A model generated the notes under the pieces. It did not search any database, was not told the DNA's origin, and worked only from the letters and a program-made list of their open reading frames with translations. The position numbers were made by a program, and so were the translations under genes. From sequence record OR532817.1: DNA of 64,000 bases. One strand, given 5' to 3'. Numbering within the stretch: the first letter of the stretch is position 1; every line of letters begins with the position of its first letter. This document shows, one piece after another, positions 33,787 through 38,427 of this stretch.

Positions 33787-34442
33787 TGAATATTAAAACA
33801 ACAGCAGATAAGTACTGGTTCATTATGAACCATCCAAAATTTGTAAATAAAAATTACATTGTACCAAAAATTGAAATTGAACCACATAATGTATGCCCAC
33901 AAACCAACAGAATTGAACAGTATGAATATTTGAATACAAAAGTTCAGTACTGGATTGAGTTTTATATCCCAGTACAAGAAGATGGAAAATGGGATATTGC
34001 ACATGATTACAAACACGATTGTGGTGGTGATACGATGGATGAAGCAATCGACTGCTTATACAATTCAGTACTAAATGAATATGGAAATTATACACAAGAA
34101 GAATTGGACAAAAAAGAAGACGAAGTGTATAATTACAATAAATCCAAGGTTGGTGGTGCAACAATGTCATATATTTTATCTAAAATCCACGAAGACCTGT
34201 TTGAATACGTAAATGATAAAATTTTGCCAGATGAAGAAGCGGAATGCTATAATAATAACACAGTTGGTTATTATGAAAACAAAATTAAAGAATTAAAAGG
34301 AACTTTAAATTCATTAATCGAATTCAAAAGAAATGCACCAAAAGAAATGCACAAAGTGATTGACAAAGACATAAAAAACGTAGAACATGACATTTTTGCA
34401 AATGAAATGAGTATTAAATTTATGGTGGATTTAGATCTATGA
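33786..34442 (+). CDS. hypothetical protein
   Basis: 218 aa; HDCGGDTMDEAI pattern recalled from phage hypotheticals. Confidence 0.8.
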   Translation: MNIKTTADKYWFIMNHPKFVNKNYIVPKIEIEPHNVCPQTNRIEQYEYLNTKVQYWIEFYIPVQEDGKWDIAHDYKHDCGGDTMDEAIDCLYNSVLNEYGNYTQEELDKKEDEVYNYNKSKVGGATMSYILSKIHEDLFEYVNDKILPDEEAECYNNNTVGYYENKIKELKGTLNSLIEFKRNAPKEMHKVIDKDIKNVEHDIFANEMSIKFMVDLDL

Positions 34443-34807
34443 ATAAAGATCTTTCAAAATTAGTTGAAGACCTGCGACAGATGCCGAAAGTTGAACAAGT
34501 TGGGTCGTTTAAACGTTTTTTGGTTATTGCACGTGCATTAGATAAAAAGGGACGTGTACTCAGTACTAAAACTAATTCATACACACAAACACATCCAGTA
34601 CAGAAGAAGTTTGCAGTTAAAGCTGGGCGGTGTGAAGCTGTATGGCTCCATGCAGAAATTCGTTGTTTGTTAGCTGCAAGAAAAGATGTTCATACATTAC
34701 TAATTGCCAGAATTAACAAAGAAGGTCTTCCTGTTCCAGCAAAGCCATGTTCTGTTTGTGAACTGGCTATAAAAGAATATGGTGTAAAAAGGGTGATTTA
34801 TACATGA
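34439..34807 (+). CDS. cytidine/dCMP deaminase-superfamily zinc protein
   Basis: LHAEIRCL and KPCSVCE motifs. Confidence 0.75.
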   Translation: MNKDLSKLVEDLRQMPKVEQVGSFKRFLVIARALDKKGRVLSTKTNSYTQTHPVQKKFAVKAGRCEAVWLHAEIRCLLAARKDVHTLLIARINKEGLPVPAKPCSVCELAIKEYGVKRVIYT

Positions 34808-34977
34808 AAAATATTTTTAAAAAAGAATATGATGGTGAAAGCCTTTGTGATGTTCAACGAGATGTTGTTGAAGCATTCAGTACAGTATTCAATCCAGAAA
34901 TGATTGATATCCCAGTCGATGAATACGGATTTCAGGAAGGTACATTTGTTGTAAGTATTAAATGGAAGCCAGAATAA
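34804..34977 (+). CDS. small acidic phage protein (57 aa, not in track)
   Basis: ATGA coupling; YDGESLCDVQRDV...DEYGFQEGTF. Confidence 0.75.
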   Translation: MKNIFKKEYDGESLCDVQRDVVEAFSTVFNPEMIDIPVDEYGFQEGTFVVSIKWKPE

Positions 34978-35105
34978 TGCGTGATCTTATTATGTTCTTT
35001 TCTGCAATCATAGGACTATGTACTTATTATTTTTCCAATCATTATATTATAGCTATGGTATTTGCAATTATATATATTGCACTTTACAGTACTGACGACG
35101 AATAA
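34977..35105 (+). CDS. small membrane protein (42 aa, not in track)
   Basis: TAATG coupling; hydrophobic. Confidence 0.55.
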   Translation: MRDLIMFFSAIIGLCTYYFSNHYIIAMVFAIIYIALYSTDDE

Positions 35106-35126
35106 AAGCACCCTAGTGGTGCTTTT
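35104..35126 (+). terminator. intrinsic terminator
   Basis: AAAAGCACC-ctagt-GGTGCTTTT. Confidence 0.85.
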
Positions 35127-35163
35127 TTCCATTTGTACAAAATATAATCTAAGTGACTTTTTA

Positions 35164-35205
35164 TTGATTTAAATCAAGAATAAAATCACCTTTTAGTGAT
35201 ATAAT
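35164..35205 (+). promoter_or_regulatory. putative FNR-dependent class II promoter of the nrdD operon
   Basis: TTGAT-TTAA-ATCAA at 35164-35177; TG-a-TATAAT at 35197-35205; box centre about -41.5; poor -35 element. Confidence 0.75.
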
Positions 35206-35261
35206 ATGTTACGTAGCATTTAAATAAATCTACCACATAATAAAAAAATCAAGGAAGAAAA

Positions 35262-37067
35262 ATGAATTCAAATAAATTATATGAAGATATTGAAAATTTT
35301 ATTAATAATACGAATAAAGATATTACTACTGAAAATGCTAATAAAGATGCCAAAGTAGTTAATACACATAGAGATTTATTTGCTGGTATCCTTTCTAAAC
35401 ATTATGCCCAAGATACTATCCCAGAAGAATTTATTAAATGGCACAATGATGGTTATGGACACTGCCACGATTTAGATTACTGGATCTCACCATTAACAAA
35501 TTGCTGCCTTATTAATTATCCAGATATGCTTAGAAATGGTTTTAAAATTGGTAGTGCTAACATTGAAGAACCAAAAAGTTTTTCTGTGGCTTGTACGGTA
35601 CTAACACAGATTGTGCAAGCGGTTGCAAGTTCACAATATGGTGGACAATCATTAGCTCACATTGACAAATATTTAGAACCATATGTTAAAATGTCATGGA
35701 ATAAACTATTAGAAAAACAAAAGAAATATAATTTAAGTACCGAATTCATTGAAGACGAATTAAAAAAAGAAGTTTATGATGGGTGTCAAACATTTTTATA
35801 TCAATTAAACAGTACTGTTTCCGTGTCAGGCCAAACCCCTTTCATATCTATTAGTTTAGGTTTAAGTACTACTAAATTTGGACGTTTAATTACTGAACAA
35901 TATTTAAAAGTTCATGAAAAAGGTTTAGGCAAAGATGGCATTACTCCAGTATTTCCGAAAGTTATTTTCTTTTTAGAAGATGGTATTAATACTAATAGTA
36001 CTGATCCAAATTATGATTTAAAACAACAAGCATTACATTGTAGTTCTAAAAGAATTTATCCTGATTTCGTTAGTGTTACATTGAATAAAGAAATCACAGG
36101 TAGTACTTCTGAAGCTGTTACTCCAATGGGTTGTCGTTCATTCCTTTCCAAATGGATAAATGAAGATGGTGAAGAGCAATATAATGGCCGTTGTAATTTA
36201 GGGGTGGCATCAATCAACCTACCGTTAATTGCTCTTGAAAGTACGTCAGATGACGTTTTCTTTGACAAGTTACACCATCACATGGACATGGCATATCGCT
36301 TCTTATCTCTTCGTGTAGAGCGTTTAAAAGGCACAAAAGCCCGACAGAACCCAGTACTGTACATGTACGGAGCCTTAGCTCGTTTAGATCCAGATGAGAC
36401 TATCGAACAACTATTTTACAATGGCAGAAGTTCCATTAGTATTGGATATGTTGGTTTATCTGAATGTTCTGAAATTCTTAAAGGAAAAATAGACAAAGAT
36501 TTTGGATTAAAAGTACTAAAATATATGCAAATGAAATGCAATCAATATAAAGAAGAAACTAATATCGCATATAGTTTATATGGAACACCAGCCGAAAGTT
36601 TGTGTTATAAATTTGCAAAAATTATTAATGAGAAATACCCCTCTGTATTGAATAGAGATTACATTAGTAATTCATTTCATTATCCAGTTCATTATGATAT
36701 TTCAATTTTCGATAAATTTCAATATGAAAGTTTATTTGGAAATATCAGTTCAGGTGGTAATATTAGTTATGTTGAAACTCCAAATCTTTCTAATAATTTA
36801 AAAGCATTAGAAACTATAGTTGATTATGCCAGAACGAAAGTACAATATTTCGGTATAAATCAACCAGTGGATCACTGCTATGAATGTGGATATGATGGAC
36901 AATTCAACGTAGATAAAAATGGATATAATTGCCCACACTGTGGTAATAATGATGAAAGTACTATATCAGTTATTAGACGTGTTTCAGGTTATCTTGGTGC
37001 ACCAAATAGTCGTCCGTTCAATAAGGGAAAACAAGCCGAAGTAATTGAAAGAATTAAACACCAATAA
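35262..37067 (+). CDS. nrdD: class III (anaerobic) ribonucleotide reductase large subunit, no ATP cone
   Basis: [45 protein letters not shown]...CPHC, RRVSGYL glycyl-radical loop. Confidence 0.97.
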
Positions 37068-37077
37068 GGAGTCAATT

Positions 37078-37440
37078 ATGACAATTAAAGCAAAACAAAT
37101 TTTATCCGGCGAACACACTGGAACAATCTTTTTACACGATGATGAATATGCACGTATTTTAGTATCAAAAACATTTTCAGAAGATGATGAAGTATTATTC
37201 AGTACTTTTGAAAATGAAGAAATGCGTGAAGTTGATATTCAAGAACAACCCAAAATTGAAGGTGGTCAACATTTAAATGTAAATGTATTATCACGTTCTC
37301 AATTAGAAGAAGCACAGAAATTTCCTGAAAAATATCCTCAACTTACTATTCGTGTTTCTGGATATGCAGTTCGTTTTAATTCTCTTACGAAAGAACAACA
37401 AAATGATGTAATTTCACGAACTTTCACTACTAAGTTCTAA
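37078..37440 (+). CDS. grcA: autonomous glycyl radical cofactor GrcA (YfiD / T4 Vs.6-like)
   Basis: [11 protein letters not shown]...[35 protein letters not shown]; AAGGAG RBS places the start at 37078. Confidence 0.95.
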
Positions 37441-37444
37441 TGTA

Positions 37445-37792
37445 ATGTTTTTTGAATATAATGATGAAAATATATATCCAATTGTGGTTAATAAGTACAA
37501 AGAACCATATGATGTATATATTGGAAGAGGTTCAAAATGGGGGAATCCATTCACTCACATAAAAAATCGTGATACGAAAGCTGAGTTTATTGTTAATACC
37601 AGAGAAGAATCTATTTCAAAATATAGAGAATGGATATTTAATAAAATTGAAAATGGTGAAATTACCATTGATGAGTTGCTAGAATTATCTGGTAAAAAAT
37701 TAGGATGTTTTTGTAAGCCTAAATCATGTCATGGTGATGTTCTTGTGGAAATAGTGAGTGCGTTATTAGATGAATTATCAAACAATAATTAA
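37445..37792 (+). CDS. DUF4326-family protein
   Basis: VVN...YDVYIGRGSKWGNPF...LSGKKLGCFCKPKSCHGDVL. Confidence 0.85.
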   Translation: MFFEYNDENIYPIVVNKYKEPYDVYIGRGSKWGNPFTHIKNRDTKAEFIVNTREESISKYREWIFNKIENGEITIDELLELSGKKLGCFCKPKSCHGDVLVEIVSALLDELSNNN

Positions 37793-38240
37793 AGATGACT
37801 TAATAAATGGGGAGGGGGTTAGATGCTCCCTTTTTGTTTCGGGTTGTTCAATGGGTTGTAAAAATTGCTACAATGAAAAAGCATGGGATTATAGAAGCGG
37901 TACTGAATTCGGTACTGAACAAGTTGAACTTATACTAAACGAATTATCTAAATCATATGTATCTGGTTTATCATTACTTGGTGGTGATCCACTTGCTCTT
38001 AAAAATTGCAGTACTGTAATCGAACTATGCAAAGTTGTTAAAGAAAAATACCCAGACAAAACCATTTGGTGTTGGAGTGGTTACACACTTGAAGAAATTA
38101 TAAATAATCATGCAGCCTCTGTATTAGAATATATTGATGTTCTTGTCGATGGTAAATTTGAAGAAGAACTAAAAGACTTATCACTTCCATATAGAGGTTC
38201 TAGCAATCAACGTATTTTATATAAAGGGAAAGATTTCTGA
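37770..38240 (+). CDS. nrdG: anaerobic RNR activating radical-SAM protein
   Basis: NGEGVRCSLFVSGCSMGCKNCYN (CxxxCxxC), LLGGDPL, IWCWSGYT, DVLVDG, YRGSSNQR. Confidence 0.96.
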   Translation: MNYQTIIKDDLINGEGVRCSLFVSGCSMGCKNCYNEKAWDYRSGTEFGTEQVELILNELSKSYVSGLSLLGGDPLALKNCSTVIELCKVVKEKYPDKTIWCWSGYTLEEIINNHAASVLEYIDVLVDGKFEEELKDLSLPYRGSSNQRILYKGKDF

Positions 38241-38401
38241 TGAAATATAGTGATTTGATTACTGAAAAAATTCGTAAACGTGGTGATAAATGGGAAGTGA
38301 CCGATAGTACTGGAAAGAAAGTTCTAGGAACTCATCCGACACGTGAAGAAGCTCTTAAACAACTACGTGCAGTAGAATGGTCTAAGCACGGTGGAAAATA
38401 A
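38240..38401 (+). CDS. small basic protein (53 aa, not in track)
   Basis: MKYSDLITEKIRKRGDKWEVTDSTGKKVLGTHPTREEALKQLRAVEWSKHGGK; coupled to the nrdG stop. Confidence 0.75.
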   Translation: MKYSDLITEKIRKRGDKWEVTDSTGKKVLGTHPTREEALKQLRAVEWSKHGGK

Positions 38402-38402
38402 T

Positions 38403-38427
38403 AAAAGCCTCCAATATGGAGGCTTTT
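38403..38427. terminator. bidirectional terminator between the nrd operon and the RBP cluster
   Basis: AAAAGCCTCCA-ata-TGGAGGCTTTT. Confidence 0.9.

Follow-up and report, generated by a model that had tools for sequence, protein, structure and literature searches.

A predicted FNR-activated promoter in front of the anaerobic ribonucleotide reductase operon of Klebsiella jumbo phage RCIP0023

The DNA described here is a stretch of 64,000 nucleotides from sequence record OR532817.1—hereafter called the window—whose position 1 corresponds to record position 186001. By megablast, positions 34400–37500 match Klebsiella phage RCIP0023 (OR532817.1, 350,174 bp) at 100% and the phages RaK2, K64-1, Muenster, and KP13-7 at 96–99%. 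These four belong to Alcyoneusvirus, a group of lytic jumbo myoviruses. The genome of RCIP0023 has a G+C content of 31%, and the majority of the 564 features in its record are labelled "hypothetical".

The window bears an operon for anaerobic nucleotide reduction on its plus strand. Its first gene, nrdD (35262–37067), is annotated as such in the record and encodes a class III (anaerobic) ribonucleotide reductase of 601 amino acids, which according to Pfam carries its own glycyl-radical domain (NRDD, 3e-169; Gly_radical, 1.9e-25). It is followed by a gene for a grcA/yfiD-like autonomous glycyl-radical cofactor (37078–37440; 120 amino acids; Pfam Gly_radical, 1.8e-16), whose product shares 60% identity with E. 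coli GrcA over 107 amino acids, and by a gene for a DUF4326 protein (37445–37792; 115 amino acids; Pfam DUF4326, 4.9e-25), which the annotations of RaK2 and Muenster call NrdA.1-like. Then come nrdG (37770–38240; 156 amino acids; Pfam Fer4_12, 7e-52, and Radical_SAM), the radical-SAM activase of NrdD, and a last small open reading frame of 53 amino acids (38240–38401), which is annotated in RaK2 and matched no family in Pfam. A hairpin at 38403–38427, detected by the terminator scan, has an 11-bp stem flanked by an A-run and a T-run and is probably a bidirectional terminator that ends both this operon and a convergent tail-fibre gene. The operon hence contains two oxygen-sensitive glycyl-radical proteins together with an activase.

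The content of the operon differs among relatives. The gap after nrdD measures 75 nt in RaK2 (L008:4168-4244) versus 10 nt in RCIP0023, and in KP13-7 a 321-amino-acid open reading frame replaces the grcA-like and DUF4326 genes (L009:4190-5155). Phages WPEC5 and vB_Ec-M-J are without the grcA-like gene (L005/L006:4467-4476); UE-S1 and Munch retain it.

Some features of the genome at large were seen along the way. Outside the window, at record positions 285196–287153, thymidylate synthase is annotated as two pieces with an intron-associated endonuclease gene between them, so that this gene is probably td-like and intron-containing. The palindrome AGTACT occurs 161 times in the window against 21.6 copies expected from base composition—the palindromic 6-mer second to it exceeds expectation merely 2-fold—and CAGTACT occurs 155 times against 5.6 in shuffled sequence; an example of such a site is CAGTACTG at 35087–35094. 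In all parts of the RCIP0023 genome, the excess is about 6–15-fold; the loci of Munch, UE-S1, and a CBB-like phage (L003, L004, and L019) show one of about 7-fold, and Phapecoctavirus, T4-like, and T5-like loci show none. The copies lie in coding as well as intergenic DNA at a median spacing of 264 nt. At the other extreme, the palindromes CAGCTG, AGCGCT, AGGCCT, CCTAGG, and CGATCG have zero copies. A literature search found no paper on AGTACT over-representation.

On its upstream side, the operon is separated from its neighbors by an intrinsic terminator on the plus strand (35104–35131, with stem and T-run at 35104–35126). The scan reports a 9-bp stem with four G–C pairs and a T-run; the fold has an energy of -12.7 kcal/mol (z = -3.8), and the stem is invariant in our MAFFT alignment, A1. 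This terminator closes the upstream transcription unit of small genes and dCMP deaminase and shields the nrdD promoter from read-through. The stretch that follows (35132–35163, plus strand) contains the palindrome TTTGTACAAA (35132–35141) and a GTGAC motif 5' of the box described below. It is partly invariant in A1: palindrome and motif are kept in RaK2-type phages and Asteriusvirus and are not conserved in the Munch type and the CBB type. Inspection by eye revealed no NrdR-like or CRP-like pattern in this stretch.

At 35164–35177 lies the palindromic FNR box, TTGATttaaATCAA. With the form TTGAT-N4-ATCAA, it agrees with the FNR consensus TTGATnnnnATCAA (Myers et al., PMC3688515) at 10 of 10 positions. 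Twenty-two nucleotides separate it from the TATAAT of an extended -10 element, TGaTATAAT, at 35197–35205 on the plus strand, and this TATAAT is invariant in A1. The predicted transcription start, placed 7 nt past the -10 hexamer, is 35212 (plus strand), which would put the center of the box (35170.5) at about -41.5. At the -35 position stands AGAATA (35177–35182, plus strand), which agrees with TTGACA at two of six positions and is not a functional -35 element. The candidates at spacings of 16–18 nt—GAATAA, AGAATA, and AAGAAT—reach one to two of six, and good TTGACA hexamers are present at other promoters of the window. A sigma-70 scan of the window, which needs at least four of six matches per hexamer, does not list the nrdD promoter. 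The exact box, the extended -10, the poor -35, and the upstream terminator had all been named in a preliminary description of this DNA, and each was found again here. The rule it invoked, that a site at -41.5 is the canonical class II geometry, agrees with the literature: in 19 of 23 directly FNR-activated E. coli promoters, the site lies at -41.5 ± 4, and the validated site of yfiD lies at -40.5 (PMC3688515).

Downstream of the predicted start, the leader contains a TAAATA hexamer at 35221–35226 (plus strand; invariant in A1), a candidate T4-type late promoter, and the Shine-Dalgarno sequence AAGGAAG of nrdD at 35251–35257 (plus strand); a ribosome-binding site is annotated at the equivalent place in phage Muenster. 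No relevant Rfam match was obtained for the leader, and its fold is not significant (z = -0.6).

In DNA this rich in A and T, an FNR-like palindrome can arise by accident. The exact box is the single match in the 64-kb window; shuffled versions contain 0.40 on average, with at least one match in 37 of 100 shuffles, so that the earlier estimate of about 0.3 chance matches per window was fair. Since shuffles yield a match this often, the exact match alone proves nothing. Sites with one mismatch are not enriched either (16 in the window versus 12.2 expected). On this ground, the palindrome could be functionless and the promoter an ordinary, constitutive extended -10 early promoter, as TGnTATAAT by itself is known to drive transcription and the genome has a base composition that favors such palindromes. 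It is the position of the box, together with its conservation, that lifts it above chance. Across 349,799 of the 350,174 bases of the genome, one exact box is found (2.6 ± 1.7 expected in a Markov simulation), and this sole consensus FNR site of the phage sits at the one position from which FNR would activate the one operon for oxygen-labile enzymes. A wider FNR regulon in RCIP0023 was considered and rejected: the same 349,799 bases contain 72 one-mismatch sites, which is about the expectation, and when their coordinates were compared with the annotation tables, none combined a gap of 21–23 nt to a good -10, an intergenic position, and the correct orientation.

Whether related phages keep the box and its spacing had been named beforehand as a check on the idea. 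nrdD upstream regions were drawn from annotated relatives and IMG/VR contigs, and the box served as the anchor for 15 loci, which correspond to about eight lineages. Each of these loci has a TAnnnT hexamer 22–23 nt after the box. The RaK2 type, with the window, has the exact box, 22 nt, and TGaTATAAT; the Salmonella Munch type (L003, L021, and L091) has the exact box, 23 nt, and again TGaTATAAT. In Escherichia Asteriusvirus, including 121Q (L004, L005, L006, and L028), the distance is 22 nt and the TATAAT lacks the TG; the box is exact in L004 and L005 and has the right half GTCAA in the two genomes L006 and L028, a change at the least critical position. The CBB type of Erwinia and Pectobacterium, Cronobacter phage GAP32, and Serratia phage BF (L019, L020, L022, and L029) show the exact box, 23 nt, and TATTTT or TATTAT. 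The phi92-like L023 has one mismatch in its left half (TTGAC), 22 nt, and TAAAAT; the Phapecoctavirus L012 has the right half CTCAA, 22 nt, and TAGAAT; and an unplaced, G+C-rich contig, L067, has the exact box, 22 nt, and TACCCT. The hosts of the relatives are all Enterobacterales, save for one record that lists Xanthomonas; for the Asteriusvirus relative Sharanji, the host given is E. coli K-12 MG1655.

Among representatives of the eight lineages, the mean pairwise identity is 95% for each half-site, 47% for the central N4, and 36% for both the 20-nt upstream flank and the 21-nt spacer; alignment A1 shows the same islands of invariance as the anchored set. The announced check hence came out strongly in favor of the box: it is kept with its spacing in 15 loci whose central bases, flanks, and spacers have diverged, which points to purifying selection on box and spacing in these relatives. 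In the 80 nrdD loci from IMG/VR, nine exact boxes lie in the 25.6 kb directly upstream of the NrdD match versus three in the other 355 kb, a density about 40-fold higher directly upstream of phage nrdD; the surveyed loci are phylogenetically related to one another, and the locus counts therefore overstate the number of independent events. A functionless AT-rich palindrome would have to be the only exact box in about 350 kb, fall by accident on the single activating position before nrdD, keep half-sites at 95% identity within flanking DNA that is 36% identical, and recur about 40-fold more densely in front of other phage nrdD genes. Chance is thus a very improbable explanation.

NrdD is encoded in roughly 2,900 phage records, and the box is not universal among phages that carry nrdD. 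No box with at most one mismatch was found upstream of nrdD in a T4-like locus, a Vequintavirus, a FelixO1-like phage, and the T5-like FFH1 (L015); in all of these, nrdD lies inside larger operons. A different kind of match was discounted. In other phages (IMG/VR loci L033, L037–L039, L042, and L043), many FNR-like "boxes" with one mismatch, which precede the NrdD match by about 235 nt, lie inside the coding sequence of the ATP cone, at its motif V-D-F-D-Q. ATP-cone coding sequence is a systematic source of false positives in FNR-box scans near nrd genes.

Several loci display arrangements of their own. In the CBB/GAP32/BF-type phages (L019:1421-1450; also L020, L022, and L029), the hairpin that terminates the upstream gene (ATACCCC...GGGGTAT, then a T-run) lies between the FNR box and the -10, and its T-run provides the -10 TATTTT—an unusually compact overlap of terminator and promoter. 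In the phi92-like locus (L023:1407-1490), a terminator-like hairpin and T-run come after the box TTGACtaagATCAA, the 22-nt gap, and TAAAAT, just 5' of the nrdD ribosome-binding site; this hairpin may act as an attenuator, or else the box may belong to the end of the upstream gene. The T5-like contigs L068, L070, L079, and L083 bear one-mismatch boxes, ATGATccagATCAA and TTGACtcagATCAA, about 90–100 nt before nrdD. A strong TTGACA-17-TATAAT promoter is present there too, and the boxes precede its predicted start by about 70 nt. In T5-like Vibrio phages of Thalassavirus (L017:2119-2147 and L048:1119-1147), exact FNR-type palindromes with the N4 ctat and ctgg occur upstream of nrdD, and they stand only 9 nt before TATAAT. 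At this distance, the left half doubles as a -35 at 17-nt spacing, a geometry that suggests repression or promoter switching and not class II activation.

This raises the question of whether FNR might act negatively in RCIP0023 as well, that is, as a repressor or roadblock. FNR does repress where its site overlaps core promoter elements (PMC3688515), and the exact Thalassavirus box close to its TATAAT would be a phage example. Against this, RCIP0023 and the 14 related loci have the activating spacing of 22–23 nt, and it would be physiologically senseless to shut off an anaerobic enzyme when oxygen is absent. Repression at this promoter is therefore extremely unlikely.

The protein that would bind the box is expected to come from the host. 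A tblastn search with E. coli FNR against 50,697 phage records returned one fragment from a Listeria phage and nothing from a jumbo phage, so a phage-encoded FNR or CRP was dismissed as a candidate; since no jumbo phage encodes an FNR homologue, the binding factor would be that of the host. E. coli FNR and the FNR of K. pneumoniae ATCC 13883 share 98% identity over the full length (250 amino acids). Two other bacterial regulators were tried on the palindrome. It does not fit the CRP site TGTGA-N6-TCACA, as its half-sites read aTTGA and TCAAg around a 4-bp center, with the core TTGA and not GTGA. For NrdR, whose paired 16-bp boxes overlap the promoter, inspection revealed no such conserved palindrome in A1 or in the anchored set.

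A palindrome as such fits any dimeric helix-turn-helix protein, and jumbo phages encode many unannotated proteins, as the mostly "hypothetical" features of the RCIP0023 record illustrate. Hence, a dimeric DNA-binding protein other than FNR, for instance one encoded by the phage, might instead use the box as its operator. Besides the lack of FNR and CRP homologues in jumbo phages by tblastn and the core TTGA in place of the CRP-type GTGA, three points speak against this: a regulator of the phage's own that had just one site in 350 kb would be unparsimonious, the motif is common to different phage families such as Phapecoctavirus and the phi92-like phages, and the palindrome equals exactly the host FNR consensus and the site of host grcA. 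We consider an operator of this kind highly improbable.

Cells contain FNR before they are infected, the protein works only in the absence of oxygen, and class II FNR promoters are textbook knowledge. Against this background, positions 35164–35205 are best read as a class II FNR-activated sigma-70 promoter of the genes nrdD, grcA-like, DUF4326, and nrdG, a reading to which we assign a probability of roughly 80%. In an oxygen-starved host, the pre-existing FNR would be a [4Fe-4S] dimer that binds the perfect palindrome near -41.5. From there it would contact RNA polymerase through sigma region 4 and alpha and so make up for the absent -35, bringing sigma-70 polymerase to the extended -10. Because the upstream terminator prevents read-through, this promoter would be the main early input of the operon. 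With oxygen, FNR would be an inactive monomer, and the promoter would drop to the basal level of TGnTATAAT. In this way, the glycyl-radical enzymes would be made mainly when they are able to work, and the host sensor would be read without any new host gene expression. The cellular level of FNR is about 2.5 µM (PMC3688515).

How complete such a switch would be is a matter of the other promoter elements. It is established that TGnTATAAT can fire without an activator, so phages of the RaK2 and Munch types may depend on FNR only in part; the dependence should be stronger in Asteriusvirus, which lacks the TG, and in the CBB type with its weak -10. The hexamer TAAATA of the leader, invariant in A1, is also present in the loci of the CBB/GAP32/BF and Munch types. 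It resembles the ATAAATA late motif that has been predicted, along with a gp55-like sigma factor, for Rak2-like phages and CBB/GAP32 (PMC5259590); the T4-type late element is TATAAATA-like, precedes a late transcription start by about 6–8 nt, and works with a gp55-like sigma factor. The hexamer TAAATA is common in AT-rich DNA. Motifs of the type cTAAATAca precede tail-fibre genes in the window. The leader TAAATA may thus serve as a second, late, FNR-independent promoter, and a tandem arrangement of an FNR-dependent early and an FNR-independent late promoter is plausible. Our searches found neither published transcription start data nor a transcriptome for Rak2-like enterobacterial phages, and no report of FNR binding at such a site.

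Carried further, these elements would reduce FNR to a modulator: the basal extended -10, the late TAAATA promoter, or both would give most of the nrdD expression, every infection would express the operon, and the effect of oxygen would be modest. A TG combined with a perfect TATAAT, a leader TAAATA that is invariant across lineages and recurs upstream of the tail-fibre genes, and the predicted late motif and sigma factor of the Rak2-like phages speak for this reading. On the other side, TAAATA is a common hexamer at 31% G+C and its promoter role is putative. Moreover, relatives retain the box but weaken the -10 (cgcTATAAT, TATTTT, and TACCCT), which argues that an activator is needed: the TG is missing in Asteriusvirus, and the -10 hexamers of the CBB type and L067 are weak. 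We regard a merely modulating FNR as unlikely. The proposal of the preliminary description, a lytic phage that wires its oxygen-sensitive operon to the host oxygen sensor, gains support from the conservation, the roughly 40-fold density, and the lack of an FNR in jumbo phages, but the "environment-conditional" expression it envisaged might be partial, given TGnTATAAT and TAAATA.

Taken beyond RCIP0023, the wiring of anaerobic ribonucleotide reductase to host FNR is, somewhat more probably than not, a trait that strictly lytic phages of Enterobacterales share in general and have long maintained; it would extend over the whole Rak2-like jumbo supergroup, Phapecoctavirus, and the phi92-like phages, and possibly, in other geometries, T5-like phages and Vibrio Thalassavirus. 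Class II FNR promoters and the use of host PhoBR by lytic cyanophages (PMC10976474) are already known. In full-text searches of the literature, no paper turned up that describes an FNR site in front of nrdD in a phage, and the genome papers of RaK2 and CBB do not mention one. If true, this would be the first oxygen-conditional expression within a lytic programme that is read directly from the Fe–S sensor of the host, and the "FNR regulon" of RCIP0023 would consist of exactly one operon in 350 kb. Strictly lytic enterobacterial phages would, if this is confirmed, not follow a fixed programme; they would sample the oxygen status of the host via a pre-existing sensor and tune nucleotide metabolism accordingly, with consequences for phage replication in the gut and other anoxic niches as well as for anaerobic efficacy tests of therapeutic Klebsiella and E. 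coli jumbo phages. The use of host regulons by phages, so far known for phosphate in cyanophages, would be extended to oxygen and to Enterobacterales, and the region would provide a natural anaerobic promoter that is compact and has a perfect FNR site.

Among known systems, the cyanophages offer the closest parallel in regulatory logic. There, genes of lytic phages are placed under host PhoBR via pho boxes (PMC10976474). As with the predicted FNR site, a strictly lytic phage carries the site of a global host regulator in front of its own metabolic genes. The two cases differ in the sensor and the signal—a two-component response regulator for phosphate in the cyanophages, a one-component Fe–S sensor for oxygen in RCIP0023—and in the host phylum. 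They also differ in that transcriptomic and gel-shift data support the cyanophage case (PMC10976474), whereas that of RCIP0023 is predicted from sequence.

In terms of genes, the operon resembles the nrdD–nrdG region of T4, which has homologous NrdD and NrdG proteins; vs.6/grcA-like and nrdA.1-like genes are annotated in T4-type phages. In the T4-like locus that we examined, gene 49 precedes nrdD, no promoter lies between the two genes, and, as described above, there is no FNR box upstream. The enzyme pair is also that of the nrdDG operon of E. coli and Salmonella. The preliminary description had named nrdDG and grcA/yfiD as FNR-activated in enterobacteria, and the literature agrees (PMC3688515 and PMC2892513): host nrdDG is anaerobically activated by FNR (PMC2892513 and PMC4009431) and co-regulated by NrdR (PMC2892513). 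As a model for the phage promoter, however, host nrdDG fits less well, as it is not a simple -41.5 promoter. The region upstream of E. coli nrdD contains imperfect boxes only, e.g., TTGAGctacATCAA and TTGATgcaaAGCAC, and overlapping NrdR boxes (PMC2892513), whereas in the phage a single perfect box stands in simple class II geometry, and an NrdR box cannot be recognized. Furthermore, the phage NrdD is T4-like, with about 47% identity to T4-type NrdD, and therefore was not copied from the host nrdDG locus.

The promoter of E. coli grcA/yfiD is much more similar. When E. coli K-12 (L100:1056-1069) is compared with window positions 35158–35177, the two share the identical 14-mer TTGATTTAAATCAA and the same tttttA 5' flank. 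In both, the box is 22 nt from the -10—TATATA in E. coli—and a good -35 is lacking. Both promoters are also tied to a glycyl-radical spare-part protein, which is grcA itself in the host and its 60%-identical homologue in the phage, where the grcA-like gene stands second in the operon, behind nrdD. The likeness has its bounds: past box and flank, there is no similarity between the two promoters, and the host alone has a second FNR site at -93.5, where the phage has its terminator. This second site of yfiD is said to be down-regulating, as Green et al. reportedly found in 1998 (cited in PMC3688515). A horizontal capture of the host grcA promoter was considered and rejected; because the N4 and the flank read differently at the homologous site of relatives, the identity is more simply explained by convergence or drift. 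Judged by sequence, the nearest known look-alike of the phage promoter is hence grcA/yfiD and not nrdDG.
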